The notes beneath the pieces are model-generated. The model searched no databases and had not been told where the DNA came from. It was given only the letters and a program-made list of their open reading frames with translations. A stretch of DNA of 64,000 nucleotides from Utricularia gibba (Eukaryota > Plantae > Magnoliophyta). Below, piece by piece: positions 2,449 through 35,523 of this stretch. A program made the position numbers and the translations under genes. The first letter of the stretch is position 1, and each line of letters opens with the position of its first letter. The DNA lies in assembly GCA_002189035.1 (NCBI GenBank), contig NEEC01000018.1:310001-374000 (forward strand), written 5' to 3'.

Positions 2449-4289
2449 ATGGGAACGACGTCGTTGGAAAGATTTGATGATGCAATAATTTAACAACCTG
2501 CTTTGGAACGTAATCAATCAATCATCAGCCCTTGTGTCCATCATCGCCTTGGACTTTGACTCGCCCCTCCTCAGCCTCCACCCACCAACTCGCCTCCTCG
2601 CAAAGGCCTTGTGCGGTGCCACGCTGAGAGAGAAGGACAACGAGGCGTTTTATTTGTATTAAAAAATTTGTGTCCATTACACCCTTAACAAAGAGGCGTT
2701 TCTAATGAATCATGAGTTGAAAATATACAAACCAACAATTGCTCCTTGAAGTTTACTAGTTTTTAGGTGAAAAATAAATGTTTATCAAGACTAAGTCTAC
2801 CTTTAGTTGAAAAGAAAATGAATGAAGAGATTTAGTTTTATTAAAGATTATGTGCAGGCCCAATCTAAAGGAATGTGTAATGACCTTTGAGAAATCAATG
2901 TTATGCACAGAGTAAAGATATAATTTATATAAATAGATTTTATTTAATCTTCAATGAAGTTCTTTTTTTTTTTTAAAGAGGAGAATATAAAATTATAAGA
3001 GTTAAATACTCGAAATAGAAAATATTGTGCAAGTAGAGAATAAATCATTATATTTGATATTAAAATCAAATTCAAATATACAATGATTAAATCCCAATGA
3101 TAACATTGAGTTTATTTGAAAGTAAAATTTTTTAATCATATTTTCTATTGAATTTATTTTATCCTTTATGTAACGTGTGTTTGTTTTTACACAGGTTTAC
3201 TAAACTATTATATCAAACAAATTAAATACGTATCCTTATCCATTCGAACTTGTCTTTAACCACGGCTTGGGAATACAGGGTACCGTACAGAAATGGGCCA
3301 GGAGGTCTCCAAAGGAACTCACAGACTTGATACTAAAGACCATCGAGCGGGCCCAACATGCTTATTATTATTATTTTCACTGTGTTTTATTATAATTATT
3401 GTACTCATTCATTGGACTGGAGTCATTTATGAGGCCAGGCTGCCTTGCATTTAAGAAGCACGTGACTTTTGCATTTGGCTGGTGAATTAATTTCATATTC
3501 CAGTGCTTCTTTGAGATATATGATATGATTGTTAAATAAAATGGGAAAATAATCAACATATATCATCTATTTTTTTATAATTTCATATGGATATAATTTT
3601 AAATTCTCCTTCGCATTTAATTACAATTTGAAGTTTTTGTCTATAATTGGATGTAAAATGGATTCTTCCCCGTGCTCAGAAGATCTCTATTTCCTCGAGC
3701 AATTTATACAAAAAGCAGGAAGAGGAAAACCTCAAATTAATCCTGACGTGAATTTGCAGTGAAGGAAAACAGGCGGTTTCTGCACAATGGAAATTTACAG
3801 AGTTTTCGAAAGAAAAACAACGTGAAAATGAGGTATGTTAGGGCAAACATTGGGGGAAAAAAGTGAGATTCCACATGACTTCCATTTTGGAATAAATCAG
3901 TCCAGTACACAACAGGTTTATAAAGAAAGCTGATTCCATTTTGCATCGCCACTCCTCTAATCCCTTGATCCCATGCACCACAATCTTCATCGAAATTAGG
4001 AATAGTTTGATAGTAGAGGAAAACCGGCTCCAAGAATGGCCTCCTCATATGGAAAACGAACTTGTCCTTATTCTAATATTCATATTAACGTGTGTTGGTA
4101 TAGAAGAAAGGCCTCTTCCAATCGATTCCTTTCATCATTACCCTTACACCTTCGTATTATTTATTTATCGAAATTCTCACAACTTCAACAAAGTCTCTCT
4201 TCATGAGATTCTATCAGGCTTTTACTCCTGAGATCATGTTTATATCTGCCATGCTTTTATCCTTCAATAAGCTTTGCTAGAACTTGATA

Positions 4290-4460
4290 AGGATTATCAA
4301 AGACATATAGGGACTTTGGAGAGGCAAATTGTACCTTTAGTTGTCACACTTAATGCATTTGATTGAATTTGAAGCCCTTGGTTTCATCAAATAAGCCAAT
4401 CATTGAGATTGCTTCAATGAGTTCCATGAATTCAACTTCTATGGTAGATAAACCAACTCT
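4290..4460 (-). mobile_element. Degenerate Ty1/copia RNase H remnant
   Basis: Minus-strand translation VGLSTIEVEFMELIEA ... KCDN* / GTICLSKVP resembles copia VALSTTEAEYMAL ... CDNQSAICLAKNP. Contains a stop and a frameshift. Confidence 0.55.
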
Positions 4461-4572
4461 TAGTTAGTGTTTGGTTGTATAAAATAGATGAATTCAAAGG
4501 GAAGATTATAAATTAGGGTCACGTTTGGTTTTGGAACATCAGGTTTTATTTTTTTATAATAATAGTTTATCT

Positions 4573-4813
4573 TGTTAAAAAATTGTTATATAGAACATCA
4601 AATTTTAAAAATTACTTAAATAGAATATCACGTTTTAAAAATTACTTTATTGGAACATCATATTTTAAAACTTACTCTATTGAAATATTACATTTTAAAA
4701 ATTACTTTATTGGAATATCACGTTTTAAAAATTACTCTACCAAAACATTAAGTTTTAAAAATTATCAAAACAATGCATCATGTTTAAAAAAATTGTAGAA
4801 ATAGTGCATCATG
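4573..4813. repeat. 30-bp tandem repeat, ~8 degenerate units
   Basis: Units start at 4573, 4603, 4633, 4663, 4693, 4723, 4753 and 4783. Consensus is about TTTTAAAAATTACTYTATTGGAAYATCAYR. This explains the periodic ORF 4583-4798. Confidence 0.9.
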
Positions 4814-5254
4814 TTAAGAGTTACAGTTTTGGTTTTTCATTTTAAAAAAATTCGTTTGATACCAAAAGAATACGAAATTTAATTTATTTAAAAGCTACAT
4901 GATAGAGCTATTTAGGAAAAATTATGCAACATGTTTCAAAATAAAATAGAATTTTATTCAATTTAAAAACATCATAAGAATTATTTTAATAAGAACTCCA
5001 AATAAGTAGCCCAATAGTGATCTTCACTAGTTTTGGGATATAGAGCAGCCATTGTGCCATTTACACTTCACAAGCTTTACTCAAGAGCAGCGATGAACTT
5101 AAGGTAACTTGATTTGAAGTCTCAAATAGAATTTTAAAGAAGATATGTTTTCTTAATCACCTGGAATGATAAGACCCAGATGTATAATGAGAGTCTCTAG
5201 TTCCACAACACTTCATATGTGCTTTTCAATTCCAGTGAGATCACCAAGGATTAC

Positions 5255-6557
5255 TGACGTATGGAAAATTCTAAAGATGTCGCAAATATTAAGGTTTTCA
5301 CCATCAAAAGTAATTTATAAACTAAACAAAAAAATCATTTATTTGCAAAGAAATTAATGTAGTAGCAGTAAGTCCAGGCAAGTCCATAAAAATTAAATGA
5401 TTTTCAGTGGTCGGTCCTATACATAAGCTATGGGAGGTTTTTGGAAATGAGTTTCTACTCTAACTTAAATTGATAAAAGAGTTATTTTGTTTCTAAACTA
5501 AAAGTAGATAACGAAGTACATAGATCAGATGATGAAAGCATTTAAACATGTTGAACATTGAAAACATAAAACGAAAATAGTGTGCATGTTGATGAAATAT
5601 AATTCAAGAATTAAAATTTGCGAGAAACGTAAAATATTTGTTTTATTCTCCAGTTCTGTGTTCTCCATGTCTTGTTCTAATACTGCATATTCCAAGGCTT
5701 CCTTGTCTTTTGTTCAAGTCTCAGCTGCACTATTGACGTTAGAGATTAGTCTCATTGTCGTGCTGGAACACCTCTTCCATCGTCTTTTCTTCCACTCCAA
5801 TTGCAAAATAAAAAAAAGACTCTCGGGAGACAAAAACTCTCTAAAACAAAAGAATCCTCCTCAAAACAAAAGATATCATTGGGTCAAAGAAGAATACGTT
5901 TTGTTTTGGAGACTTCTTTGGCTACGCGATACCTTCTGTTTTGGGGTAGATTCCTATGTTGCAGAGAGATTTTTCTCTCTCGAGAGCGTTTTTGTAATTG
6001 AAGTGGAAGAGAAGACAAAGGAAGAGGCGTTAAAGTATGATTGGTTGACCGTGGAACTAATCTTTGATGTCTAGAAGTGCAGGTGAGACTTGAACACAAG
6101 ACAAGGCGAACTTGCAATTTGAGAAGAAAAAGACAAGTAGAATAGGAGAATTGGAGAATTGAACAAATATTTTACTTTTCTCTCAAATCTTATTTCTTGT
6201 ATCATACTTCATGAATGTGCACACTATTTCTGTTTCGTGTTTTCAATGTTCAATGTGTTCAATTGCTTTTACCATTCAATTTTCATATTCTGTTATTTGC
6301 TTTTGATTTGGAAAGCAATAGAAGACTTTTATCGATTTAAGATAGAGTGCAAACCTACTTTCAGAAAACTCCGGTTAATTCAGCTTATGTATATGATCAA
6401 CAACTAAAAACCTTTTGCTCTATGTGGATTGACATAGACTTACTACTGCTACATTAATTTATTTGTAAATGAAATGTGGTTTGTTTGTTTAGTTTATCAA
6501 TTTTTTTTATGGAAAAATCTTTAGACTTACTACATTTGTTGAATTTTCCACCCATCA
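5255..6557. repeat. 1.3-kb imperfect palindrome made of two inverted Athila-type LTR 3' portions
   Basis: Left arm 5255-5892 aligns along its length with the reverse complement of 5913-6557, leaving a ~20-nt loop. Example: ctcttccatcgtcttttcttccactccaattgcaaaa vs ctcttcctttgtcttctcttccacttcaattacaaaa. Ends are TGA...TCA. Confidence 0.9.
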
Positions 6558-6592
6558 AACCCACATAATCCGCCCAACCAAATTTGTCCTAA

Positions 6593-7522
6593 GGCCGTGT
6601 TTGGTAATAAGGATAAGATGAGATAAGATGTGATATCCTAATATGCAAGATAATAATAACGTATTTGGTAAGTGGAAGTAAATTTTTCTGGGATACTTTT
6701 TTCCTTTTTATAAGTCATAAAAGTATCCCCATCAAAACCCCTCTTTAATTTTATACCTTAATGGATAACTTTTTGATTATGAAAAGTCTAAAATACCCAT
6801 AAATACATCTACATCTTGTTTCCAGACACACACTTCTCTGATATGGATATCTGGGAAGGGGTATTTGAGACAGTTTTCCAGACACCCACTTCCATCATGT
6901 GGGTGCCTCGGGAGGGTGTTTGTGAGACTACAACCAAATTTCAGGCACCCACCTTTGCTCATGTGGGTGCCTAGAACCAGATATATCCAAACGTTTCGGT
7001 ACGAACCACGGTTCCGGTTCGAACCGAACCCACCTCTACCTATGTGTATCCTGTATTAATACTATCTATGAAATAAGTAATTTGGTAGAAATCCAACACA
7101 CGGACATAAGTTATCCATAAACCATGCCTATGTGTATCTCACATTAATGGCACCTACGAAATAAATAATGTGGTAGGAGTCCAACACATTTGTGTATTGG
7201 ACTCTTACCAAATTACTTATTTCGTAGGTAACGTTAATATAAAATAATTCAATAAATGAATTTCAATACAGAAAATTGGAGAATGATTGAAGAGCCGAAG
7301 CCAAGAACCTTACCCAGATAAAAAAAATGTAGAAGGGTAAAAATGTTTTTGTTCAAAATCTGTAAAAAGTAATCCAATATATGTCTACAAAACAACTCAT
7401 GGGATATCTTATTGCAACCCATAAATTCCATACTACCAAACATAATGTGTACTTATAGGAGGGATAATTTTTATCTGGTATAAATTATACCAGTATTACT
7501 AAAACTATTACCAAACACGGCC
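6593..7522. mobile_element. PIF/Harbinger (Tourist-like) non-autonomous element, 930 bp
   Basis: Perfect 17-bp TIR GGCCGTGTTTGGTAATA (6593-6609 and 7506-7522) with a TAA target duplication (6590-6592 and 7523-7525). Confidence 0.92.
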
Positions 7523-8625
7523 TAAATGTATTTCCAAACTGGTCAAGTTTTAACAAGTTTTTGGCAGCTATTCGGTTAACCAAAAAAGCAATTTCTGGTT
7601 TTGTGTGCCACAATCTCTACGTACTCATTTCAGCTTTTCAAGGAAGTGTATTCAAGGTGTCGTATTCCTCATTACATTTTTGACTTAAAATTTCTTAATT
7701 CTAAAATTCAATTTTCTAAAATAAAAAAATTTAGGTTTTCAAACTAAAATATGTCAATGATAATGTTATAAATTCTTTTACTTTTATAAAAAAACTTGCA
7801 TAAAAATTATTTCATTCTTATGGTTGTCACATTTAATCGAGTTGATAACTCTTGCAATTTTTACTTGATAAGGATGTCATATTTTATTTTTGTATAAATA
7901 CTAAAATGCTTCCATGTGTGCCTTATTGTCAACATGAGTTTTTGTTTATTGCAATTTTAGTGTATTATCTGTTTTATATTACAATATTGTTTGGTTACTT
8001 GAGTTTGTATATATGCTAGGGTTAGGATTTATTTAAATTTTTTTGAAGAAATTTTTTTATATTATTTAGTTGAGTTTTTAATCTATGAACAACAATAATA
8101 TCAATGATACATTGGGATTTGTGGTACTATAAAAAAATAGCAGCAGAAATGATGTTAGATAGAAGTGTGCAAGAGTTTAGATGATTGATGGAAAAATGTG
8201 ATTTTTGTAATTTTCGCAACAATAAGTTTTGAAAGATGTGGAATTAATTGTGTGAAACATCATTACACTTGTATCAAAGGACAAGTTATAAAATGTTTAA
8301 GAACTAGAAAAAGCATTTTGAAAACCTTCTGAACTTGTGATTATGATATTATCTAATTTGGAAAATCCAAATTTCGAAGATGAAAGTAGAAGTCATTATT
8401 GTGAAGTTGGAAGTAGCAAGGAGAAAGAAGTGAAGAAAACATCAATGAGAAAGTTCACAAATTTGAAAGATATGGTAGCCAAAGTCAAGGTATTGATTGT
8501 TCATTTTTTTTTTATGATACAAGTATTCCTTTGATAGGTATAGTTCCAAGTATTTTATAAAAATGTTAATGGTGGTATCTAAGTTGCTTGATGTATTAGA
8601 AATTTTGATTAATAGAAATTTCAAA

Positions 8626-9672
8626 TGTTGTTCAAACCAAAATTCTATATCAAATAAATTTGTAAGTCCTAATCTTCATACAAATTGAATACAAAATGCA
8701 CAATAGAATTTTGGGATCTATCAAGGAGCTAGTGCTTGTTTTGTGTTTTCTCAAATGCAAGATTACAAAATAAATATCACACTTATTCTAAGCTCAAATT
8801 AATAGTTGTATGCAAGTTTAGTAACTAAGATCAAATCTAAACACATGCAATATCAAATACAAGTTCTAAGCACAAAATAACAGTAAGATGTCTCAAGGTG
8901 ATTCAGGTGATATAGTATTCAAATTTCTAATCTAATATACAATTTGTCTATATGCATATTATAAATAACCTAAATCTACTTAGGTTGTTTCTTATGCTTT
9001 CAACTAAATCAATCCCCAATATCATCATCAATATCGCTTAGGTCTACCCATGTGCAAAACATGTAAAACTAGATTTACCTGGCTCAACTGCTTTTACCCT
9101 AATCTAATACCTACTATATTTATTTTAATTCGTTGGTCTAACTCTAATTAAGCTTATGAGCTGCACTGCTATTCATTCCCCTCCTAAGGTCTATCCAAGA
9201 AATGTTAGAAATGAAAGCTAATGTTTGAGGTCTTTTTTCTTGAAAAATTGCCTTTTTCTTCCCTTTTGTTCGTGTTGAAAATCTTGGTGTGTGTTCTTCA
9301 CTGATGCTTCCCTTTTCGATTCTCTCCCTCCAAAAATATCTCCTCTCCTTTTTTTTTTCTCAAATGCAGTGTTCTTGACACCAATACTATTCTTGGACAA
9401 TACCTGCAGATGGTGGGTGGTAGAATAGTACTTTTCATCCTCCTTTGGATATTGTGACTACTTTGACTTTATCCACACATCTTTCAGTCCGATTTGCTAC
9501 TAATCCTTCTACTAGACTTAATTAAACATTAGTAACAAGATGGACTAAATCAAAGGCTTTTTTCTGCTTTTATACATAAATATGAAATTAACCTAAACAA
9601 CACACATAACCTAAATCACAACAAAACATGGCAATTTTGTATTATAAAATACTATGAAAATGTGTGTTATCA
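8626..9672 (-). mobile_element. Probable gypsy-type LTR fragment or solo LTR inserted in the hAT remnant
   Basis: Ends TGTTGTTCAAACCAAAATT ... GAAAATGTGTGTTATCA look like LTR termini, and hAT coding remnants resume on either side. No matching TSD (TCAAA vs TATTC). Confidence 0.45.
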
Positions 9673-10552: not shown

Positions 10553-12005
10553 TGTTGGGTTTCTCGTAAACATCACATGTCACAAAAGCAGCAGAATTTA
10601 AAAATTTTTGAGAAACCCTCAACGCAAATCTTGGAATACGGTATACATCATATAAGGGGATGCTGAAAATATCTTTCAGTGCACTCTGTTGTTCACCAAC
10701 CGCCAATAGTAGATGGCCTTTATGGTATCCACACGTGGAGCACTCCGTCAATAACCTTCTCAAAACTGTAGAATGCTGGTCGATCTCCTCAGGTGCTAGT
10801 AGAGAAATTCGCCCCCTTATGGATCAGTTTCAAAAAGCACGAAGATGATGGAAGATCTGTAGATCTAAATCTTTTGATAGATATTTGGTAACATATCAAA
10901 TAATATCTCCATAAAGATCTTATCTTGTGGAGATATGCATATGTTCAAAATCTTATCTATATGAGATCTTTTATTTTGAGTTTAATCAATATTTATCTCA
11001 GAATAACTCTCTATTTAATTTATCCACTTTACCAATTACATCTCATGTAATTGTGTCATAGGCTTCTTCAATCAAGGCCATAATAATGGATTTATTAATT
11101 AACTTTTAATTAATCAAATCCATCATTATCGATCATGAGTGATGTCTAGCAACATATCATGATCCCCAAGATATAAGAATAATCAGATGAACTGATTGAG
11201 CCTTTCCATGACCAGCCACCATGCAATGAACAACTTTCATCATACTTATATCTCATTCGATACCAGAACATGGGTATGTGTCTTTCTGTTATATCAAACT
11301 TATAATTACTTTCAAACACTAACACTCAATGATCTATTCAAACAATTCGAGTGTTATTACCCTAGGCCCAGGACTTACTGTTAGGCTTTGATGCATTTAC
11401 TTGAGATATGATCTCATCACTAACATGAGTGATGAATCCTTTATTGATCAATCAACTATCTCCAATCTTAAGGAGTCACATCACTACTCATCCAAATTAG
11501 GCAAGCCATGGTTAGGCTCTCATTAGTAATGAGCAAAAATGTGGGCTTAAGATCAAGATAACTTTGTTGACCTCAAGCCTAAGCTTATTTGCACGGTTGT
11601 CATATTCGAGATCTTGCTACTGACACTTGGTTAGCTTCCCATAATAGCATCTCGAAGATGAGTCATCCAGTGAATCGATTCTCTAATCGACACTCATACA
11701 TAGGTTCTAGTAATCTCATTACATCAATTGTGAGAACCATTGCCTAAACAATTTAAGGAACTCAATGTGTGCCAGCTTATCCGTATTTGTGATATCCTCA
11801 TTTCACAAATATGCTAGCCATGGAGTTTTTAACTTGAGCATAAGTGCTTGAAGAATCTCACATTATGATCTCATCATAATTTCTATAGCACATAGATCAA
11901 GTAAAGGATTTTATCAATGATATAAATTTGATCACAATTCAAAGTAAATATCAAAAGATAAGATTTGCCAATGAGTTGATTATCTCTAAAACACATGCAC
12001 CAACA
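10553..12005 (-). mobile_element. Solo LTR (1453 bp) of a Ty1/copia (Angela-like) family
   Basis: TG...CA ends and a perfect 5-bp TSD TTTGA (10548-10552 and 12006-12010). Colinear and highly similar to the PBS-adjacent LTR at 45163-46675. Confidence 0.95.
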
Positions 12006-12399: not shown

Positions 12400-15300
12400 A
12401 ATTCATCCACGAGCAGTGAAAGTGTTCTTAGAAGCAATCGTAAAAGTTGGAGGTGTGAGAATATTCTTGGCAACCTATGACAGAATAGAATAATGGGAAG
12501 ATTGATTCTTTCAACATTAAAGTATATTAAAGTTGTCCCTCTTGTTACCATATAATTGATGTATTGCATCCAACATCATTGGCCATTGTTCCCTTGCTAG
12601 AAAAAACATAGACCTACACCATAGATCAACAATCATATGTAGTTGATACCATGACATTGTCATTCTCAACTTCTGATTGAATAGATTTCACAATATCTAC
12701 ATTAAGATTATACAACTCATATAAGTGTTCTAAAGTTGAAAGATCAGTCTCATGTAAATTTTTAGCATTCAAATCCACACTAATCATGCTACGAAATTAT
12801 AAAAAGCACAATGCACATTCAAATCAGCAAGCAAACCTAATCCTTGAACTTGAAGATTAATCATATTGGCCACTAGCAGCAAAGAAGTAATATGATTATA
12901 ATATTTCAAAAACTTTGAAATCATTTTTTAAATCATTAAAATATTTTGAAATGATAAAAAGCATTGACTTCTTCCACTGGCATTTCAGGAACTCTCGATC
13001 TAGAGTCAATGTGAGATGACATAGAACTTGAGGTTCTTTGATATCCTTCCCTTTGTTGAAACAAGGCTTGAAGACCAAACTTCAACGTGTCGCTCATTGT
13101 TGCAAGTTGAGCCAATACTTCTGAGTTGTCCACTCCATAGACCGCTTTCGCTGTTGCAATGTTTCCACCAGGCGGTCTATAGGAGTTGTCATAGCAATTG
13201 GCTGTGGAATAGGAATTAACAGCCATTTGTTCAATGAGTCTCCGAGCATCAGCACTGTGACGGTTCGCTAATAATGATCCATTACAAGCGGCATCCATCT
13301 GTCCTCGGATCATAGGAGTCAATCCTTCATAAAAGTGCTGCAAGATCTGGCCTTCAGTGAGTCCATGCTGAGGGTAGGAGTTGCAAATTCGGTTGAAATG
13401 ATCATAATACTCCTGCAAGTTTTCTCCTTCGCTTTGCATCATAGTTGTTAAGGCTCTCCTTCTAGTTGAAGCTCTTCTTAGTGGTGCATAGCGATCCAAG
13501 AATTTTTGAACCATTTGCTCCCATGTGGCGATCATGAAGGTGGAAGTGCATTGAGCCACTTCAAAGCTCGTTTGGTAAGACTGAAAGGAAAAACTCTAAG
13601 CTTGACTTGATTCTCTGTGGCTCGCTTGGGGTGCATGGATGCACAAGTCGTGTGCAACTCACATAGATGATGGTAGGGTCATCATTTTCCCTTCCAACAA
13701 ACTTTGGAAGCGTCTGGAATAAGTAAGGATGTAGTTCATAGTCTTCTTCTCCATCAAAGATGATGCATAAGGGACGGTCTGAATGATTTGCAGTGATTTC
13801 TTCCTTGATGGTCCATAGTGCTGGTCCACGGTTAGCGGGAAGTAGTACTGGAAAGTTTCCATGAGGTTGTTCGCCCTGGGTCTCAGGCACTATTGGTACT
13901 CCAATGGGTATATGCGCTGCCATGATGTTTCTAGTGGTTGAACAGGACATCTGCTTTCTCTTTTTGGAAAGAAAGGTTCGTTCCACCTCTTGGTCCAAAG
14001 GGTATAGAACTTCTAGGTAGGATCTCAGGCTTGGACGAACCCTTGGTGGATCTAGTTGCATAAAAAGAGAAAAACAGAGCAGAAATAGAAACAAGAAAAA
14101 GAAACTATAAGGAAAAGAAAGAAAAAGAAGAAAGAAAAAAAAAAAAATAAAAGAAAACTAAAAAAGAAAAACGAAACTCACACACACAACACCAAACACA
14201 AAAAAATTTAAACTCCCCAGCAACGGCGCCAAAAATTTGATGCATGTCATTTTCAAAACAAATTTTAATATTTTTAGAAATCTTAAAACACAAAAGCGTA
14301 GTACGGGTGTCGAACACAGGGAGTTGTTTTTCAGTGAAAGATGATGTTACACTAAATATAGCTATCACGATTTGTAAAAAGTTTGACAGGAGCCAAATCA
14401 TAGACACATCACCGGAGTGAGTTTGTAGCATAAAGATGGGAGAAACGTAAATAATGAAGCTTGAGTAAGGGAATAAGAGGGGTTTTGAACAGAGAACTGA
14501 AATGAACGTAAGTGATGAACCTCAAATAAAGTGAATGTTCCTGGGTATGGAATCTTGTCCAGCTATGTTCGTTGCATCTTCACTCTTCTTTGATCTTCTC
14601 GAGTATTCGGTTAGAGTAATATGTAATTTCCTATCCTCCCTTACACTCTCTTGCAAGAAGGCACGAGAATAGCCCGATGTTGTTCCTACTTGGACGAATG
14701 TCAGAATAAGAGGTCCTACCGGCGTACCCTCACGGCCGAACTGTCCGCGTGTGCCTGAGTGTTGCCAATGACCCAATGAGTCCAGATATGAGGTCACTAC
14801 CTATCCATTGATCCTGAGGTACATCCACATACAAAATGTTGTCTTCCTCCTACAAAAAGGGCACGAGTTGGTGCTCTCTACCTTGCTCCTCTCCAAAACT
14901 TGCGGGTAATGATCAGTTAACCATGAATCTTGAAGAAGGAGACTGTTACAGAAAAACTGCAATATAGTCGCACGAAGACATATGAAACCCGTTCGGATTC
15001 AAAGAAGAGATGAAGATAAGCTGCGAACAGCCATACAAACTAAAGGAAATGAAAACAAGGTTCTAGAGAGAAGCTAGAGGAAAATCCTCTAGAGAGAGAA
15101 ACAAAGTCTAAACTAAACTAACTACTGCCTCGCTTGTCCGAACTAAACTGAGCTGAACTATTTTGCCTGATATTTCGTGTTCCTCTGGTTCTACTAGAAA
15201 GGTTGGGACACCCCCGGATCTATGTTTCGTTAGCTTATCTTCATCTCTTCTTTGAATCCGAACGAGTTTCGTATGTCTTTGCACGACTATGTTGTAGTCT

Positions 15301-16650
15301 TTCTGTAGCAGTCCCTTTATTCAAGATTCATGGTTAACTGATCACTACCCGCGAGATTTGGAGAGGAAACAAGGTGGAGAGCACCAACTTGTGCCCTTTT
15401 TGCAGGAGGAAGACAACGTTTTGTCTGTGGCCGTATCTCAGGATCAATGGACAAGTAGTGACCTCGTATCTGGACTCATTGGGTTATTGACAACACTCGG
15501 TCACACGCGCGCAATTTGGACGTTCGTCCAAGGAGGAACAACATTGGGCTACGTGCCTTGTTGCAAAGAGAGTGTAAGGGAGGGTAGACAATTCCTTACT
15601 CCTATAACCGAGTACTCTAGAAGACCAAAGAAGAGTGAAGACACAACAAACATAGCTGGGCAGGATTCCAAATCCAAGAACCTTCACTTTATTTAAGGTT
15701 CATCACTTACGTTAATTTCAGTTGTTTGTTCAAAACCCCTCTTATTCCTTTACTCAAGCTTCATCATTTACGTTTCTCGCACCTTTACGTCCAAACCATT
15801 TACAAATCGTAACAATTGTATTTAGTGTAACCTCATCATTCACTGAAAAACAACTCTTTGCGTTCGATACCCGTATTACGCTTTTGTATTTTACGAGTTT
15901 TAAAAATATTAAAATTTATTGTGAAAACGACACAAATCAGACATCTAGAATCAAATAAAGCACAACTAACATAGGATTTATGGAAGTTTTCAGAGATTTC
16001 ATAATAGTTCAATTATTAGATGCATTATCAAATGTAATTGAGAAAATACGATCAAATATATCATATTCATGAGATATATCAGTAATTATAACGTACACCA
16101 ATTTGAGGATTATCACAAGGCCGAAACCCAAGGATTCTTTTTTCAATGATCCAATTAGAATTAATCCAATAAACAGTACTTAGAATATAGTTTTCATTAG
16201 TTATATCACGTCAACTATCACTAGTCAAATGAAACTTACATTTAAGTGATTAAAATAGAGAAATCAAAAGTTCTTTTCTTTCATTGAATTATTCTAAACA
16301 AAGCCTAATAGTTTTCTTCCAGAAAAAGGGACAAATAAAGGCTGTATTTTGTTTGTAAAAAATTCAAAATCAATAGATTCTCAACTTCGAAAAAAGATTT
16401 TTCATTAGTAATTAAAACAAACACATGGTCAATTTTAGCCATATTTGAATCAAATGTAAATTTGAAACTAATATTACCACCAACAACATCCATTTTTGGC
16501 TTTGTAAGATTTGAAGTATCTCGATCATGGTTTTTGTTCTTAATATGACATACAAAATTGGTAGTAGAACCACGTTTACCATGATTAGTACAATAGAGAT
16601 TTGAAGTATCTCGATCAGGGTCATGGCAGTGCAATGAAGATGATATGCGC
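12400..16650 (-). mobile_element. Second degenerate hAT transposase (Ac/Tam3 type), interrupted by the Athila-like fragment
   Basis: Minus-strand remnants: GSTTNFVCHIKNKNH (BED-like, ~16530), YWINSNWIIEKK (~16140-16180), FDRIFSITFDNASNN (~16010-16056, catalytic motif), ANMINLQVQGL (~12840-12875) and VAKNILTPPTFTIASKNTFTARG (dimerisation domain, ~12405-12474). Confidence 0.7.
12955..15939 (-). mobile_element. 5'-part of an Athila-like Ty3/gypsy element: fold-back LTR (14238-15939), PBS, frameshifted gag, truncated after gag
   Basis: PBS TGGCGCCGTTGCTGGGG (plus 14215-14231) is the tRNA-Asp type used by Athila. gag lies in ORFs 13561-14094 (LYPLDQEVERTF) and 12936-13559 (TWEQMVQKFLDRY...QSEGENLQEYYDHF...QILQHFYEGL), with a frameshift near 13560. 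Confidence 0.88.
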
Positions 16651-19684: not shown

Positions 19685-22600
19685 GAGAAAATTTCAAATT
19701 TACCATTAATGTTTTCTCTAAAATTCATTTTTGTCATCAAACTTTTACGATTTCATTTTTACCATTAAACATGTATAACTTGTTTCATTTTTACTATTAG
19801 AGTATAAACCAATTTAAAAATATTGAAAAACGGCTCAATTCAAAAACCGTTCAAGAATGATGATTTTAAGTTAATAAGACACTTGCTTCTTCAGCTTGAC
19901 TCGGGTTTTGCTAGGAGAGATCTGACTTTAGTTAGTGAGGCTGAATTTGATAGAGTCACAACATTAGAGAGTGAAATGGATGGTCATGACATCCGTATAG
20001 AGATGAGTAAAGATTCTTAAAATTGGGCAAGCTTGGATGATCTTGTATTTGTTGAAAATGTTGTTGAAAGTCAAAAAAATGTTTCAAAAATTCTTGTTGA
20101 AAATGATAAAAAGGTTGTTGAAGTTGATGCTTGTTTTTTCACGGACAATGTTAATGAAAATGACAGTGAAAATGATTCTGAAGAAAGTGAAGATAAAGGT
20201 GTTTGTGACTCTCATTGCAGTGATGAAGAATTTTGTTGTGAAGAAGATCATGATTTTACAAGAGAGGGTGAGGCTTTTAAGAAGTTTGTAGATTCATGTG
20301 TAGAGTCTAGAATTAATGATGAAAGTATTGTGAGTGTTTGTCAGAGCTTGAGAGATAATATTGGTTTTGAAGGTAATATGAATGATATGGACTCAGGTTA
20401 TGATTTGGGAAGTCTCCAAGAGTTAGATGAAGAAGAAATCAGCAAGACTCCTCTATATAATCTTAAGAGTGATGCTTAAGATCCCAGTTTGGTTAACGGT
20501 TTGGTTTTTAACTCTAAAGAAGAAGCAAGATTTTCCATTCAGACAATGGAATGAAACATGGCAAAGATTTCATATTTCGCACTGACATACAAAGAGTGAT
20601 TGTTACATACAGAGCCAATGGATGTCCATGGTGCATCTATGTTTCCAAAAAAAAAAATGACAAAGGTTGGCTCATAAAAAGTTTCAATAACGACATCAAG
20701 GATGTGCTAGAAGTAGAGCAAATATTGGTTTAAGAACCAGCTATCTAGCAAAGAAATTTCTGCATAAATTCATTGATAATCCAAAACTTGTTTTGAAGGA
20801 GTTTAGGATGGATTTGATTAAAAATTTACGAACTGAAATTTTGAAATCAAAGGCCTTTAGAGCAAGGAAAAAAGCATTACATATTTTGAACAAGATTGAT
20901 TCTGAACAATGGAGTTTGATTCGAAATTATGTTGCTGAGATATTAAGATCAAATCTTGGGTCTACAGTGCATTTGCAGCCCTTTGATTTTGAGAAAACAG
21001 AATACAAGAGATTCAAGAGTTTGTATGTTTGCTTGGCGGCTTTAAAAGAAAACTTTAAATCCGGTTGTCGGAAAGTTGTGGGAGTTGATGGATGTTTTCT
21101 TAAAGGAGGCTTTAATGGCCAATTATTAACTGATGTTGGAATAGATGCTAATAATGAGATTTTTTCGATAGCATATGCAGTTGTAGAAATTGAAAATCAA
21201 TGGAGTTGGAAAGAGTTTCTTGAATTACTTAAGGAAGATCTTGAGGTTGTAGATGAACTTGAATGGACATTTATTTCTAACAAACAAAAGGGGTTGTTGG
21301 AGGCTTTCGAATAATTGATGTCAAATGTTGAAAATAGGTTTTGTGTTAGACACTTGCACTCTAACATGAAGACTGCTGGTCATAGTAGCATTAAACTAAA
21401 AAATCTTCTCTAGGCAGCAGCAAGAGCAACAAAACCTGAGGTTTTTGATGGACATATGAAGGAGCTGAAAAAAACAGACTTAGAAGCTTACAAATGGTTG
21501 CAAAAGAGGCCTGCAAACCAATGGAGTAGAGCGTTTTCCAGGATGACCAATAAGTGTGATACATTGCTAAACAATGCGTGTGAATGCTTCAATAGTGTGA
21601 TTGTTGAAGCGAGAGAGAAACCAATTCGTGGTTTATTAGAAGGAATTCGTAATTATCTCATGACAAGAGTGACAACAAATCTTGAAACTGCACAAAAGTG
21701 GACAGACACTATTTACCCTAGAATTCACCAATTTTTTGAAAAAATCATGGAAGAAGTTGGAAATATGATTCCAATAGGTATGACAAAAACAATTATCAAA
21801 TCATGGGACCATTTGAACAGCACACAATGAATATGGAAATAAGACTTGCACTTGCAGGAAGTGGGAGTTGATAGGAATTCCTTGTAAACATGCCATATTA
21901 GTCATGTGGGTAAGGAAGGAGAGGCCGGAAGGCTATATAACTGAATGCTACACTGTTTCAACATACATACGATGTTATAAACATGCTATAATGGGAATCA
22001 CTAGTCCCACTTTTTGGCATAAACTTAATTTTCCACCACCTATCCCTCCAATGTTTGAGAGAAAAAATTGGGAGGCCTAAAAAACTGAGGAAAAAGCAGA
22101 TGGATGAACCTCCTGGTAATCCCCACAAGCTTTCTACAAAGAGATTCAATAATCAGTGTAGCCGTTGTAAAGAAACTGGACACAATGCCAAAAGTTTCAA
22201 GATGGCACCTGCAACGCAACCTGAAGATGAAGGCCAACAGGTTGTTTCTAATCTCAAAATGAAATCAAATAAAAAAATGTGGTAAATTGTATATTTCAAT
22301 TATAAATTACATGTTTTTATTGTGCACTATTTTTTTCTTTGAAATAGTCCAAGAAGCCAAGAGGAGATAATGTGAGAAGAGGGCATGGGAGAGGTGGAGG
22401 TCGATGGAACAGTGAGCATTTAAGGCTAAGAAATAATGTCATTGAACACGTTGAAGTTGGCTCATCCAGCATACATGGAGCACCTAGCCAAAGGAAAATG
22501 ACAAAGGTATTTAAAATTGTGTGGTTTTTTGGTATAAAGAAAATTAGCTTTATTGTTATTTATAGAAAACCAAAATGCAACTAGTACGTGGAAAAAACAA

Positions 22601-23119
22601 GGAACTTCTACTACTAGAGCTTCTTTTAAGGTATATGAAGTGTAATCTTTTTATATACTGCAGTTCATTTAAACGCATCAAAAGTGTAGATTTGTAAAAT
22701 GATTTTTCTGGATTTTTATGTAGATTTCTCAAACTCAAGCTGTGGTTGATGCACCTATCATCGTGAATGATAGAAGAAGTTACATCACTTTATCTAATTT
22801 GAAATCATCATTAAAGGGCTCACATAACAACGATGATGGAAGGTAAGTAGTTAAATCTTAAGATAATAGCTTTCATATGTGTTTTGTTGTGAAATGAAGC
22901 TATAATTATGCCATTCATGTGTTTGTTTTTCATGGATTTACTGTATGAACCGGTCTAAACCGATTCAAATCAATTTTTCAATATTTTTAAACCGGTTTAT
23001 AGTATAATAGTAAAAATGAAACGTGTTCTACATGTTTAATGGAAAAAATGAAATTATGAAAATTTGATGGAAAAATTGAATTTTAGAACAAACATTGATG
23101 ACAAATTTGAAATTTTCTC
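19685..23119 (+). mobile_element. mudrA-like: Structurally complete MULE/MuDR element (3435 bp) with an inactivated transposase
   Basis: ~145-bp TIRs starting GAGAAAATTTCAAATTT at both ends and a 10-bp TSD CAATCTAAAA (19675-19684 and 23120-23129). The transposase is split into ORFs 20033-20479, 20551-20733 (CPWCIYVS), 20793-21314 (VVGVDGCFLKG...VGIDANNEIF...FISNKQKGL), 21456-21830 (NNACECFNS), 21868-22080 (SWIM, GIPCKHA) and 22055-22285 (CSRCKETGHN). Confidence 0.95.
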
Positions 23120-25500: not shown

Positions 25501-26044
25501 TTCACATCGTCTCTAGTATATCTTTACTAGAATATGACAATAAATCTTGTGAATAATAAAATCATTGAAATTTTTTTCACACACAAAAGATATGTACATA
25601 TGTGAATGAAGTAGTCATTGCACTTGTGAAATGAATGAGAATGTAGATGTAAAAAATGGGAATGAATATTTGTGTAGAGGATATGAAAATGTATAAAGAA
25701 ACAAAATCAATAGGTAAAACTGAAATGAAAATTTATGTATGATATATGATTTATAAAAAATCTTTATGATATTATATTTACTAGAATAATAAATTTAACT
25801 GTTATAAGTTTTTACAGCTATTTTTTTTCTATAAACTAATGATATAGTTGTTGGATATAGCCATTGAGATCCAACGGCTATTTTTTACATTAAATGTAAG
25901 GATAGTTGTGGTTTACATAAACCACGGTCGTGCCTACTAAACCATGCTCTCCATAGGTGTGGGTTATGTAACTAGAGGTGGGCACAGTTACGGGTTGACC
26001 TATGTGACCCATAGCTCAACCTGTGCTGCATGGGACAGATCATT

Positions 26045-26978
26045 TGTTGCATGTCATTTTCTCAAAAAAATTTAAATATGTAAAACGTAAAACAAAAAAG
26101 AGCATAGTATGAGTATCAATCTCAGGGAGTTGAGTTTTGCGAAAAGTGTTTTTTAGAAAACTTTCACGAATTGTCACAGATTTGTAAAAGTAGGTTTTTG
26201 AAGTACAAAAATAAAAGATACAACCTAAGTAATGGACCTTGACTAAGGGTTGCAGTTCCTTGGAAATGGACTCCGTTTCCTCCTTTTGTCTATCCTCGCT
26301 TTAGCTTTCACTGATTCCTTCCAAATAGCTAGTTATATGAGCAAGGAATAGCCTAATTTCCTTTACACTCTAATTGACTAGGAGGTATGAGAATAACCTC
26401 ATGTGATTCCTCCTTGGACGATTAAGAAGACAAGAGGATTGACGTAGATTGTCTTCAAAACCAAATTGTGCTAAGTGTTCTTCCTCCATTGGGGGAGAGG
26501 AAGAACAAAGTTCTAAGTGCCAAAATAAAATGTCAAAAGTCTGAAAATAAGTGTTCCAAGTCCCTTTTATCTCACTACTCACGTGCATTAACTCCTTCTG
26601 ATACTCTTCCCATCATTCCTTCTATCTTGCGTGTGACACCAGTTTTCCCTTGCATGCAAGTTAGCACTCAATCACTGCTGCAAACTCTAACTTGCCATAA
26701 GTCAAGGGCCTTGACTAGTGTCAGTCTTCCATCCACAATTGTTCCAAGTCGCGTGCAAGGCACGAAAAGTCAGAGTCTGACTTCTTGCAACACTCCACGA
26801 CTGCCTCCTGATATATTTCGGTCAAAGTGCCTAAAAAAGACAAAGAAAATATATAAAAAATAGAAAAATATGAATTTTCTAATAAAATCAATACTTAACA
26901 ATAAGTCTTCTAATTTGGACGTCTTAATAATTAACAATTAATAATACATAATGAACAACTAGAAAATGACACTTAACA
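26045..26978 (-). mobile_element. Solo LTR (934 bp), Athila-like
   Basis: TG...CA ends and a TSD with one mismatch (TCATT / TCATC). Homologous to the solo LTR at 35524-36780. Its minus-strand start TGTTAAGTGTCATTTTC matches the LTR start at 40879. Confidence 0.85.
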
Positions 26979-29975: not shown

Positions 29976-31300
29976 GATGTGTGACATTCCATAAATTTTT
30001 TTAAAAGAATTTAAAACATAAAACACATCAAGTGTAATACGAGTATCGATTATAGGAAGTTAATTTTCTAAAAAATAATGTAGTTAGAAATCGGATACAA
30101 ACTATCACAATTTTGTAAAGGGTTTATGAAGGTGAATGATGAAAGAAACTAAACTAAAAAGACTATAAGGTAAGGAACAAAGCAAACTTAATCAATGACC
30201 CCTAAGTAGAAGTATTGCTCTAGAACTAGAATCTTTTCCAACTATATTCACTCTATCTCCACTCCTCTCTTGTTCTTTTGGGTACTCGGTTTTAGAATAA
30301 GGATTTGTCTAGAGAAACATGAAATATGAAATACAAGTTTAGAGAAATATGAAACACAAATTTAAGCTAGAAACTAGAAAGAGAATGTATTCTTTTGTCT
30401 ACATTGGCTAGCTCATAAATTCTACTACTAGTTTTGCATGTATTGCAATTAATCTTATTACTACTTTGATTTTGTAACACAATGCTCATTTTTTCTATCA
30501 AGGCTCATTATTAATATCTTATGTCTTTTAGAAATCATGGAATATATTTCCAAGATCTTGTTTGTCATCTTGTGTTGGCTCGTTTTCAACATTCTGTAAA
30601 ATGTATCTCTCCAACAACACACTTAAACACAACTTAATTTAAGAAAAGATTAAATGCAACACAATCAAAAAAGATAATTACCCTAATATAAGTAAAATCT
30701 ACAACTTATATTATTAACTTCTAATATAACAACTTTAATCACAGTTAAACACCAAAAAAATATAAAAAGCAAAAATAAAATTGATGGATGGAAATTTTTT
30801 AACGTGTCGCATGCCTACAAGCATTCTCCATAAGCGAATAAGTGTATTCTGAACATGCAATTAACACAATTCACAAAGAAATTAATATAGTAGTATTACG
30901 TTCAAGTCAATCCATACATGACATACATTTTTTAGTTGTTAGTCATATATGTAAACTGGATTAAACAAAAGAGTTTGATTTGTAAATAAGTTTCTAGTCT
31001 AACTAATTTATAATATTCATCTACTAGCTTCTAAACCATCAAGCATAAAACATAACGCATAACTCTTGTTCTAAAGTCGTACATATAAAAGCAACAAAAT
31101 CATAAGTCGCAACACCTTTATCCGAGCACAACATTTAATCCAATTGGTCAATAAAAACATGAGAAACCATAGTCGTTCAAATGCAACAAATTAAATATAA
31201 AAAGTGCTGAAAATGAAAATGCATGGAGAGGAAAAATGTTTAGTAGATTCTCCATCAATTTTTGCTCTTTTCGTGTGTTGCAGGACTTCTTTTCCATTTA
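29976..31300 (-). mobile_element. Two adjacent degenerate Athila-type LTR pieces (~29976-30781 and ~30782-31300)
   Basis: 29976-30310 resembles the arms at 14238/15939, and 30650-30780 resembles the ordinary U3 start at 40879. 30782 onward (TGATGGATGGAAATTTT...) resembles the arms of the 5255-6557 palindrome. Confidence 0.6.
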
Positions 31301-31879
31301 CGTTGAATGTTTCAAATTATGATTTAATTTTATGAGATTTTTTAGATATAATAATGTAGAAAAAGAAACTCACAATTGATAGCAATTTCCAAATTCACAT
31401 ATTGATGGATTACTGAAAAAATTCATTAATATAATATTTTAATCATTTTTTTATAATATCATTATAAAAAAAATCACAATTCATGGAAATGAAATATATC
31501 ATTCAAATACATAAAATATATGTATACAATTATATGTATATCTTAGCTATTTTGCAAATAACATTGAAAAACTCAGTTACCTTAAAAATAACTTATTCAA
31601 ATTAGGTACTTCCCCAATAATATTTAGTAACACAAGTCGTTTCCCCAATTTACTGGAATTATGTCACTAGGTTGCCCGCATACTAGACACGTGCAATTCA
31701 CAAGTGCCAGTAAAAAACATGTATTCTACAAACATGTTTCTATAAAACATGTATTTTTAAAACATTTTCATGATATTATGTATTTTTCTAATAACCTTTT
31801 TTAAAATATGTATTTTGCTTATTTTCTCCCCTGTTTTGCTCTTGTACAAATAATAACTTTGCAAAGTGGTTAGATTATT

Positions 31880-32140: not shown

Positions 32141-34119
32141 AGAGATTCTCTTAGAGGAATCCCTAAAGATCAAACAGTTACTCAAAACTTAGTCTCATTT
32201 TCATAAATAGAATCCAATAATACTACGACATGTCATCAACAAAACTTATGAAATATTAGTTACGTGCAAGCAATTCCAAAAATATTAGTTGAGTGTCAGC
32301 ATTTCAAGCTCTATTTTTGCTACATGAGAGTAATTTAGTGTCGATAAATATTTTTTTTTTACCAAACCTATGAACTGAACATTTAGAGTCAACCAAAAAT
32401 CTATTGTTTGGGATGAATTTATAAGATTTATGACAAACAAACACTTATGTTTTGCAAAGCCTTTAGACAAAGTCTTACTTCCAAAGACACTTGGGTCAAT
32501 CAAATGGTAATCAATAAGCTTTCATGACTACTATGTTTAACAGCTTAAGCAACAAAAGCATTAAGCTTTAATTGTTTTTTTTTGTTTTTGCTTACACATC
32601 TTATCAATGTGACAAAGTTCATTATGCAAAAAATATGCATCTTCCTCCAAAAGCACTAATACTCAAAATGTAAGTTTCTCTTACATTTTTCTAAGAGTAG
32701 GATACTCAGCGCTACATTCTAGTGAAAAGCTTTTATGCGTAGGACTATAATAATCCAGGGTTTAGAAGTGAGAGAGTGGAAACGATTGATGCGATACTCA
32801 TCCCCAGCCTAGCGTACACCAAGCAGAGTGGTGGGGGTGACATTGCATTCATGGAACCGAAGGCACTAAGTCACAATGAAAACCCAAGTTCCGGACAGTC
32901 ACCCACAAAATGCACCATGGCACCGAGAGTGTACCCTTCGTGAGGAAGTCATGGAAGGGTATGCAAATTGAGCTTGGTGGGTGGGCTTGCGAGCAAGTTA
33001 ATTATGCCTTGTGGATTTTGCTATGCACATGAGGGAATCCCCCTCCAAGTTGTGTGTGCACAAAGTGGGCAGGTAGAGGGAACTTAGGCAGTGCGATAGA
33101 GACACGGGCAAGGATTTGGGGCGAAAATCAGGGTTCGTCCTAAGGGGGCCAGGAATGAGAGCATGAAGGAAGCAGCGTCGAAATGGTTTATCGGGTAGAA
33201 AGAGAGGTCAAAATATTGGGGAATCATGAGAGATCTTTAAGGTAAGGGAGATTTGCTTGCGCACCAAGAGTTTGGGGCATCGTGAGCCCCTTTGCGAGCA
33301 GGACTGGAGTTTAACCAAGAGATCAGCAGTAACTCAACTAAGCTGAGATCGTGGAAGCCATGAACCCTAGAGGTGGGGTCGACACGGGCGTTGTTTGACC
33401 GGAATGCATTGTCGACGGCAACGTGACTTGGTCATGTGTCTTTTAGTCAAATAAGCCTTTGAGTGAGCTAATTTTGCAACATGCGTTTAGGCGTGAGGTG
33501 GAGAACCCTACCCATGACTAACCCCATGCTTTTTGGGTGTAGATTTGGACGATGAGGTGTCTGTGGATGGCACCAATGGGGAGGCACCGATGAGGCAATC
33601 GGGCTGAGGGGAGAACCAAACTTGTGGCTCACACATATGCTTATTTTGGCTTACTTACTATTGCAAATGTTTCTCTTTTTGTCTTCATATGATGCTTGAA
33701 GAGAAGTGCCTTCCCATGTGATGTTGTGTGTTGTAGAAATGGGAAGTGTCATCCCTCATTACATTATGAACGCTGATTTTGTGAGGAAATGTTTTCTCTT
33801 AAGATCTTTTTGAAATGGGATACACCATGTTTGGAGATGTTTATTTTTAAATGTATTTTGAGCTTGTAACATGGGTGTGAGCCCCTTCGCAACATTGGCC
33901 ATGTGTAGTGTGGCTGAACACATTATGGTAGCACACATAATTTATGGTTCTGTTTTGCGGTGCATTGCATTTTGGTATCAAAGCCAGGTTACCCCATTGT
34001 CGCCACTCTTGATCACTATGGGATGCTTGGTAAGGTAAGTCAAAACTAATAGTTCGACTATGTCAAGGAACTTGAGGTAGCACAAAGCAAGACGGGGAGG
34101 TCACCTATAGAGAGCACCA

Positions 34120-35203
34120 TGCCTACAACTTTTTGCGAATAGTATCGTAGTTATGCTTTTTATTCCTAGTTGATTTAGTCTCAACCTTGTTTCTAATAGT
34201 TCTTTTGAGCAATGCAGCAATTTTCAGTCATTCCAAATCCGAGGAGCCGAAGAAGAATAGTGTGATTATAGAAAATATGGGCAAAAAGCTAGATAAAGTA
34301 CAAACAAATCCCAAGAAAGAGAAAAAGCAGATTTTTGGAAATGATGGGGGAGAGAGAGAAAGGGAGAAGACCATTGAATGACAATAGACACTTTTGGAAA
34401 AAAATCTCTCCATAGCAAGAACACCAAGGAGGCAGACGATCCAAAACAACAAGCTCCCTTTGAAGATTTCTTCTGCTCTTGAAAAACACTATTCCTAGCT
34501 TAGAATAGTTTTAGTTTTACAATGTGAACCATTTACCTTCTCTGTTTATGTGATGCACTATTTTCTGTTCTTTAACTTTGATACCAGAATGTTGCTTATA
34601 GTATGTTATGAAAATGTTTTTCTTTCTTTTTTTATGAGTGGCTAAGTACTTAGAATAGTGCCTTGGGGCCAAAGGGGTGTAATGTGCTAATCAATCATTT
34701 GACTTTGTTAATCATAGATCACACCACTTCCTTATCAAACCAGGATAGATCCAAGAGGAGGTAGGAGTGCATTCATCTTAACAATCCTAATTAGAGGAGG
34801 ACCAAAGATTATGGGAAAACAAGGGTTTGGGTAGACCTAGGCTTTTGCTTGTTAGATGTATGATTTGTGGTGTATGTGAGGTTATTTTAGTAATAAGCAT
34901 GCAATCCCTAGGAGTCCCAAGGCACATTCATTTCATCTTATACATAACCGAGTTCAAAAGTTTGTTGCTTTTCTTTATTGTATTTAATTGCAAATCCGCC
35001 TTAATCCTAGTTAAAACTAAATATATCCACATGATATGGATTGCATGCATTGATAATCACATGACAAGCCCCTACTATTCATGTTCGACCCTAATCACTA
35101 TACTCATAATTGAATTATGTTTGAATATGTATTAGATTATAAATTTTATTTGATAGCATAAATTTGCAATTCTAACAACACTGCATAAATTTTTGGTTTA
35201 TCA
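34120..35203 (+). mobile_element. Probable unrelated LTR inserted in the Tekay-like gag region
   Basis: Non-coding ~1.1 kb containing the ATGAGTGGCTAA LTR-type motif and ending AATTTTTGGTTTATCA, after which gag resumes. Left boundary and TSD are not established. Confidence 0.45.
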
Positions 35204-35523
35204 GGCAGAATGGGCGACATTCAAGCAATGATTTCTAGATAGATACTACCTGGCGATCGTGCTAACATAGAAGGTATAGGAGCTAAAGGTGATTGAACAG
35301 AGGAATGGAGAGACTGTCTACAACTTTTACACACGCTTCCAAGGGCTATTGCATTTCACTTGGGGACTCGCGAAGAGTAAGCATCTCGTGACACACAAAT
35401 TCCAACAAGCACTCTTATCGCGTTTAAGGAAACAAATTATCTTTGTGGCCGCATAAACACTAGAAGAGCTACTTCAAGCAGCACTAATAGTGGAGACAAA
35501 ACTTGGAGCAATCAATGAGGGTT

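Follow-up and report, generated by a model that had tools for sequence, protein, structure and literature searches.

At positions 5255–6557 of the 64,000-nt stretch of Utricularia gibba DNA analysed here (the window), two repeat arms of about 640 nt face each other across a very short loop, which raises the question of how such a palindrome came about and whether it has any function. We confirmed that the 1.3-kb palindrome is genuine and transposon-derived. With somewhat better than even confidence, we favour a reading in which a ~640-bp unit from an unclassified dispersed transposable element (TE) family of this Lamiales genome was duplicated in inverted orientation, in one event while the copy was young, leaving a non-coding, single-copy structure that now persists as an inert relic. 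The parts of the palindrome are as follows.

5255–5892, forward strand: left arm, 638 nt, a single unit of an unclassified dispersed repeat, with outer terminus TGACGTATGGAAAATTC
5893–5912, no strand assigned: loop, 20 nt, AATACGTTTTGTTTTGGAGA, within which the arm motif TTTTGTTTTGGAG is partly repeated
5913–6557, reverse strand: right arm, 645 nt, the same unit inverted, with outer terminus TGATGGGTGGAAAATTC read on the reverse strand
5887–5918, no strand assigned: innermost AAGAAG / CTTCTT pair around the loop, read from the sequence, a candidate fold-back microhomology

Global alignment of the left arm against the reverse complement of the right arm paired the two from end to end in inverted orientation, with 487 matches, 127 mismatches and 55 gap columns (21 indel events). 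Full-length pairing had been proposed earlier at an estimated identity of ~70–75%; the pairing stood, while the measured identity was 72.8% with gaps counted and 79.3% without them. Both arms were tiled by six collinear inverted repeat pairs (I1, I2, I5, I6, I7, and I10), and a further inverted pair, I16 (5832–5851 / 5899–5918, 85% identity), reflects an arm motif that was re-copied in the loop. The terminus of the right arm was also recovered as an exact pattern match at 6542–6557 on the reverse strand. The flanks (3000–5254 versus 6558–9000) had nothing in common in either orientation, and a larger element enclosing the palindrome was rejected for that reason. A scan for target-site duplications (TSDs) of 3–11 bp, allowing boundary shifts of up to ±15 nt, returned none, with just chance 3–4-mers. 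The original prediction was borne out in its termini, its 20-nt loop, its unrelated flanks and its lack of a TSD.

Public sequencing runs filed under the same species label, available as contigs only, so that their depth does not equal copy number and their 31-mer contigs cannot show small RNAs, contained the locus in samples from two studies. In run X1, a 1148-nt contig covered 5346–6493 with 0 differences and spanned the loop. In run X5, which belongs to another study, contigs covered 4400–5657 and 5659–6620 at ~97% identity, the second of these (record 12) crossing the loop. Since the loop was spanned by contigs of two independent studies, the palindrome is not an assembly artefact, and its presence in both samples makes it older than their ~3% divergence. 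The divergence of the X5 orthologue was ~2.7% over the flank and left arm, and ~3.0% over the inner left arm, loop and right arm; with the palindrome having diverged between the samples at least as much as the flank, it shows no sign of constraint.

The same runs placed the arms in a dispersed repeat family, represented by many contigs that were 80–90% alike. Contigs of less than 90% similarity concentrated on the outer ~450 nt of each arm, position 5644 being covered by at least 18 X5 contigs, and four X5 contigs entered unrelated sequence just before 5261. Paralogous contigs were ~81% identical to the left arm (e.g. X1 record 6 and X5 record 11). Over the inner ~200 nt and the central junction there were few or no paralogous contigs, and the X1 depth of 5.6 in bin 5814–5914 equalled that of the locus's own contig; the central junction thus appears single-copy. 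Within the window, two further features are relevant to this family.

30782–31403, forward strand: lone non-palindromic relative of the arms (T), with homology to ~31332, starting with TGATGGATGGAAATTT
31404–31425, forward strand: fourth terminus-like motif TGATGGATTACTGAAAAAATTC, 622 nt past the start of the lone copy (about one arm length), with GGATTACTGA common to it and the left-arm boundary

The lone copy aligned to the arms by blastn at 68–70% identity over 144–282 nt (E down to 9e-14), and its local alignment scores, 146 and 184, exceeded that of the best shuffle (70). Its terminus TGATGGATGGAAATTT is the same as that of the right arm (TGATGGGTGGAAAATT), with the left arm differing by two changes. 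On these three grounds, the relative that had been predicted at ~30782–31300 is real. It has no inverted or direct partner within the 64-kb window, and a profile search of the window built from the three copies found no additional family member. Sequence downstream of the 31404 motif showed no significant likeness (score 55, shuffle maximum 52). Upstream of the TGA terminus, a possible extension of the family was marginal in both comparisons that we made: the left-arm flank against the lone-copy flank (p ~0.1), and the lone-copy flank against the consensus of X5 loose ends (p ~0.07), the latter in A-rich DNA. A metagenome scan with a conserved 22-mer produced three matches, which were discarded as chance, their homology being limited to the pattern itself.

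Divergence between the arms (Kimura two-parameter, K2P) was 0.245 ± 0.023. At plant substitution rates of 7e-9 to 1.3e-8 per site per year, this corresponds to roughly 9–17 Myr. Identity was even along the arms (0.60–0.84 per 50 nt), with a longest perfect run of 16 nt and a transition to transversion ratio of 70/57. A transition partner was faced by 31% of cytosines in CG and CHG contexts, compared with 14.5% of those in CHH (Fisher p = 0.0013), and such an excess is the footprint usually left by methylation that a silenced repeat once carried. Transitions compatible with G:U pairing numbered 40 on the forward strand versus 30 on the reverse (p = 0.28). Overall, the substitutions between the arms look neutral. 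In the terminal 30 nt, each arm carried 5–6 private changes relative to the paralogue consensus (loose ends at 6508), and no derived change shared by the two arms was visible there. The arms were barely closer to each other (K2P 0.245) than to the lone copy (~0.29–0.30 for either arm, first 300 nt) or to the paralogous contigs (~81% identity). This combination of private but not shared derived changes, with the arms nearly as far from each other as from their relatives, points to a duplication that took place when the copy was young, or at its insertion.

Three features argue for a single event: both arms end at the same position of the unit, the AAGAAG/CTTCTT pair flanks the loop, and the loop holds a copy of an arm motif. 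The inverted duplication is most likely to have arisen by fold-back (snap-back) synthesis or template switching at AAGAAG/CTTCTT on either side of the 20-nt loop, or else by end joining of a hairpin-capped fragment, a route that would leave no TSD. From then on, over a period of the order of 9–17 Myr, each arm would have accumulated neutral changes on its own until 79% identity was left, former cytosine methylation presumably generating the transition excess at CG and CHG sites. We infer the fold-back mechanism, its timing and the present inertness of the locus from these patterns, some of which also weigh against the favoured reading. The arm–arm K2P is hardly below the values between arms and relatives, leaving the sisterhood of the arms unproven, and a native foldback element or a palindrome formed at insertion fits the arm divergences equally well. 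In addition, the outer ends of the arms coincide with the start of homology in the lone copy (TGA...), which is easier to understand as a true element terminus used by transposition or integration machinery than as the product of random fold-back.

The near equality between arm–arm divergence and the divergence of the arms from other family members would also be expected if two members of the family had inserted independently, head to head and 20 nt apart. We consider this barely credible. It demands insertions ending at an identical unit position within 20 nt of each other, in a family of tens of copies; the partial copy of an arm motif in the loop points to a single copying event; and neither arm is surrounded by a TSD of its own.

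In a different reading, the palindrome is a native foldback-type or long terminal inverted repeat (TIR) non-autonomous DNA transposon, e.g. one derived from a Mutator-like element (MULE), that was inserted whole by a transposase acting at two identical outer termini and has since decayed. Both outer ends do carry the family terminus TGAYGKRTGGAAAWTY, the unit consists almost entirely of two arms with a tiny middle, pairing over 640 nt at 79%, and the arms look equally distant from the family consensus, as if they had been identical at insertion. Moreover, 13 kb away lies a MULE that looks intact and is flanked by a perfect 10-bp TSD. Set against this, no TSD of 8–11 bp was found when up to two mismatches were permitted for 9–11 bp and one for 8 bp, with shifts of ±15 nt, and a 9-bp TSD with 21% divergence would escape such a scan in just ~29% of cases. 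Subterminal repeated motifs were not in excess (9-mers fell within the shuffle range) and the arms lacked tandem arrays. Comparison of the arms with the MULE TIRs of the window revealed no significant similarity, the one further family copy that the window contains is a lone arm with no inverted partner, and few or no paralogous contigs covered the central junction and inner ~200 nt. Taken together, this makes transposition of a ready-made palindrome unlikely, although it deserves consideration, and neither derivation from a MULE nor a foldback origin is demonstrated. The neighbouring MULE itself occupies 19685–23119, with TIRs of 146 nt and the perfect 10-bp TSD. Derivation of the palindrome from these particular TIRs was rejected for lack of significant similarity; a GGAAAATTC-like string common to them and the arms is a chance resemblance.

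The original prediction had instead described the palindrome as LTR-derived and solo-LTR-like. We found this not to be demonstrated, given that there is no TSD, no significant primer binding site (PBS) or polypurine tract (PPT), and no match to an LTR of the window. For the unit as a whole, TG...CA ends are automatic, as every palindrome with TG at the start of its arm will show them. Both arms start with TGA, and their inner ends read ...TCAAAGAAG (left) and ...CCAAAGAAG (right), or ...AAAACA if the end is set ~22 nt further in; neither a clear CA end nor a terminal inverted repeat was found for the single arm. One string near the loop was considered as a remnant PBS.

5919–5933, reverse strand: PBS-like string GGTATCGCGTAGCCA, weakly resembling the tRNA-iMet primer binding site TGGTATCAGAGCCA, not significant

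Its local score was 13, and 150 of 3654 random 70-nt windows of the same DNA (>4%) reached 14 or more; the left-arm counterpart is limited to TATCA. The same iMet PBS pattern search picked out the true PBS sites at 33973 and 45148, but none in the arms.

Each arm could still be a complete LTR, perhaps with a PBS remnant, the palindrome having formed from an inverted pair of solo LTRs, or from plus-strand strong-stop DNA (LTR plus PBS) that primed on itself by snap-back and was then end-joined. The arm does begin with TG, and its length of 638–645 nt approaches the 622 nt that separate the 31404 motif from the start of the lone copy, suggesting a unit with two defined ends. Both arms show ...AAAACA ~20 nt from the loop, on its outer side, and in the right arm this leads into the iMet-PBS-like GGTATCGCGTAGCCA (cf. 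TGGTATCAGAGCCA). A purine-rich run AAAAAGCAAAAATAAAAT precedes the lone copy, with a weak likeness to the upstream consensus of the X5 paralogues (p ~0.07), as a polypurine tract would show. The window is moreover dominated by LTR retrotransposons and holds a second LTR palindrome 9 kb away. However, the PBS resemblance is non-significant and almost missing from the left arm, the similarity of the purine run is marginal and lies in A-rich DNA, and the TG...CA ends of the whole unit carry no weight in a palindrome, where they are automatic. The scan for a TSD of 4–6 bp, with boundary shifts of ±15 nt, found none. Compared with all LTR-like repeats and internal retrotransposon sequence of the window, the arms showed no similarity, and the lone copy at 30782 has neither a direct partner in the window nor an adjoining gag, pol or other coding domain. 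We therefore regard an LTR identity for the arms as improbable.

A broader version of the strong-stop scheme would hold that kilobase palindromes of retrotransposon-type units arise recurrently in U. gibba at the moment of insertion, when plus-strand strong-stop DNA (LTR plus PBS) primes on itself by snap-back and is end-joined without target duplication. Such palindromes would, while young, act as hairpin-RNA "killer" loci against their own family, and the one at 5255–6557 would be an old example, with no TSD and with a weak iMet-PBS-like string ~20 nt before the end of its arm. We rate this generalisation as very unlikely. Between the alternatives discussed so far, the inverted duplication of a single TE copy in one early event is the reading that we retain.

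The second palindrome of the window, an inverted pair of ATHILA LTRs at 14238–15939, was compared with the present one. The two share no sequence similarity, and their arm divergences differ (K2P 0.245 versus 0.14 ± 0.016), so that the palindrome at 5255–6557 is, as had been proposed, a second and independent case. The same two observations led us to reject a shared origin for the two palindromes, which lie 9 kb apart, and the different repeats and K2P values indicate separate events. An ATHILA-type remnant extends from ~10.5 kb onward.

The immediate setting is a gene-free, AT-rich stretch in a window that is itself AT-rich and gene-poor. A 30/60-nt tandem array lies at 4575–4765 and a high-copy MITE-like hairpin at 7047–7246, and neither a tRNA nor a sizeable ORF was found near the palindrome. 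Upstream, an R2R3-MYB gene was recognised from R2R3 repeats and a 14-residue motif in ORFs of 275–1697; we take this motif to be the subgroup-9 (MIXTA-like) signature. The gene ends ~3.56 kb before the palindrome. The best-matching expansins came from Lamiales (82–84% identity), placing the genome in that order.

We then considered whether the palindrome could act as an RNA. The predicted minimum free energy (MFE) was −555.5 kcal/mol for the forward strand and −508.9 kcal/mol for the reverse, and 512 of the 638 left-arm bases were paired with the right arm in the MFE structure. Relative to 25 dinucleotide shuffles, which averaged −280 ± 9.3 kcal/mol, the fold had a z-score of −29.6. The original prediction of a ~640-bp stem, should the locus be transcribed, is thus supported by the predicted fold (−555.5 kcal/mol on the forward strand, z = −29.6). 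Its proposed reading of the substitution spectrum, where a C>T/G>A excess would indicate methylation-driven decay and G:U-compatible changes would suggest selection on RNA structure, gave the CG/CHG transition excess and G:U-compatible changes without strand bias (p = 0.28). Given the absence of such a bias, the 47 kcal/mol by which the forward strand folds better than the reverse needs no selection to explain it.

With so stable a predicted fold, an advantage of 47 kcal/mol on the forward strand, and retention of the locus in a second, ~3% diverged sample, the palindrome might be imagined as a functional hairpin-RNA locus like Mu killer or Arabidopsis IR71. A transcript running through both arms would be diced, the resulting siRNAs would silence either a gene or the repeat family, and selection would maintain the locus. 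Several observations speak against this. The run guessed to be RNA (X9) had 0 contigs on 4400–7400, which for a single run seen as contigs is no proof of absence. G:U-compatible changes were unbiased by strand (40 versus 30, p = 0.28), between-sample divergence in the palindrome was not below that of the flank, and the longest perfect duplex is 16 nt in a stem interrupted by 21 indels. The Rfam search found no family, and hence no miRNA family, within 5255–6557; the nearest match was a sub-threshold MIR475 at 7150–7231 (35.5 bits versus a gathering score of 70). A weaker argument comes from run X6, which looks bisulfite-converted: over 6225–6491, which includes 3 CG sites, its contig(s) showed 35 changes per 38 cytosines. 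These counts hint that non-CG cytosines in the flank and outer right arm were mostly converted, i.e. unmethylated, unlike what would be expected of a hairpin active in RNA-directed DNA methylation (RdDM), but they are too indirect to count as a result, being per-contig change counts from contigs that hide partial methylation. On this evidence, a functional hairpin locus seems highly improbable.

Coding capacity offered no alternative role, as the ORFs of the palindrome (short or loop-spanning) had no Pfam domain and no homologues. According to the original prediction, a single-copy loop junction accompanied by neither small RNAs nor transcription would mark the palindrome as a dead, one-off rearrangement. 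As far as the data go, this is what we see: the junction appears single-copy, and X9, as one contig-only run blind to small RNAs, has no contig there. We infer that the palindrome is inert and a one-off, with nothing to indicate transcription or a maintained structure.

Long inverted repeats of transposon sequence are a known source of hairpin RNAs that start transposon silencing, and occasionally of new miRNA genes, and it is against such systems that the palindrome may be judged. Among foldback and long-TIR non-autonomous transposons (Drosophila FB, plant foldback elements, long-TIR MULEs), the unit is nearly all made up of two long inverted arms. These elements have identical outer termini in common with other genomic copies, as does the U. 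gibba palindrome; unlike them, it has no TSD, no subterminal arrays and no similarity to MULE TIRs, and it comes with a lone single-arm copy and an unrepeated centre. The ATHILA inverted LTR pair at 14238–15939 is likewise a kilobase palindrome of retrotransposon or repeat sequence, old and with no expression evidence. Its spacer, however, is ~210 nt versus 20 nt at 5255–6557, and it is built of LTRs, whereas the arms described here are untied to any retrotransposon.

A closer functional parallel would be with Mu killer of maize (PMC3440606) and the inverted duplications generated by alternative transposition of Ac/Ds (bioRxiv 10.1101/2020.01.07.897926), which resemble the U. gibba palindrome in being an inverted piece of a transposon that can potentially yield a long hairpin RNA and whose outer ends are transposon termini. 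Those loci have near-identical arms, are transcribed from a flanking gene, have demonstrated siRNAs and heritable silencing, and face an active target family (PMC3440606; bioRxiv 10.1101/2020.01.07.897926). In contrast, the U. gibba arms are 21% diverged, the hairpin is a prediction, and the family looks old and dead. The Arabidopsis hp-siRNA loci IR71 and IR2039, together with the inverted-duplication route to new MIR genes (PMC10827316; PMC2582634), share with it a long intergenic inverted repeat, a short loop and the potential for RDR-independent dsRNA. They differ in being defined by their small-RNA output, while the U. gibba palindrome is known from sequence, and in that its arms consist of repeat sequence in which no captured gene fragment was found and pair far less perfectly. 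Being old, imperfect and apparently silent, the palindrome adds little on its own to what these systems have taught and is best seen beside them as an ordinary relic.

Across window positions 4400-7400, around the palindrome formed by two inverted arms of ~640 nt, the public sequencing run X6 behaves like bisulfite-converted DNA when compared as contigs, a form in which partial methylation is hidden. Its changes include 181 C>T and 139 G>A, and in the palindrome flank at 4402-5174 it carries T in place of C at 87 of 89 cytosines. Further features of the window are listed below.

Features annotated in the window
7047-7246: high-copy MITE-like hairpin
19685-23119: Mutator-like element
31404-31425: terminus-like string TGATGGATTACTGAAAAAATTC
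33973-33990, + strand: near-perfect tRNA-iMet primer binding site (PBS), TGGTATCAAAGCCAGGTT
34576-34586, - strand: inverted TGGTATCAAAG, 600 nt downstream of the preceding PBS
43138-44040, - strand: copia-type gag ORF
45148-45161, - strand: PBS TGGTATCAGAGCGA
45165-46675: LTR-like repeat, 1.5 kb
58342-59280, - strand: alpha-expansin gene

The single non-palindromic relative of the palindrome arm in the window, starting at 30782 (+), sits between two direct repeats (26043-26851 and 35522-36706) that lie ~9.5 kb apart and share ~78-81% identity (K2P 0.23); the intervening ORFs showed no retrotransposon domains. The terminus-like string lies 622 nt past the start of this lone copy, an offset of about one palindrome arm length, and has a 10-mer in common with the boundary of the palindrome's left arm.

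The + strand PBS agrees at 17/18 positions with the 3' end of tRNA-iMet, and the sequence 5' of it (...TTGCA TTT) resembles the end of a 5' LTR, for which no partner LTR was present in the window. The second PBS directly adjoins the LTR-like repeat, with the gag ORF to the left of both; the sole other copy of this repeat in the window (10555-12005) is 34.6 kb away, at 89% identity.

The Mutator-like element has TIRs of 146 nt (86% identity; termini GAGAAAATTTC) and an internal MULE transposase-domain ORF (20793-21311), and the target-site duplication flanking it is a perfect 10-bp repeat, CAATCTAAAA. Over the high-copy MITE-like hairpin, summed contig depth in public runs, a measure that is not a copy number, reached ~1900; against the MIR475 precursor model the hairpin scored a sub-threshold 35.5 bits (gathering score 70). 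The alpha-expansin gene, with at least one intron, encodes DPBB_1 and Expansin_C domains; the proteins most similar to it come from Lamiales and share 82-84% identity.
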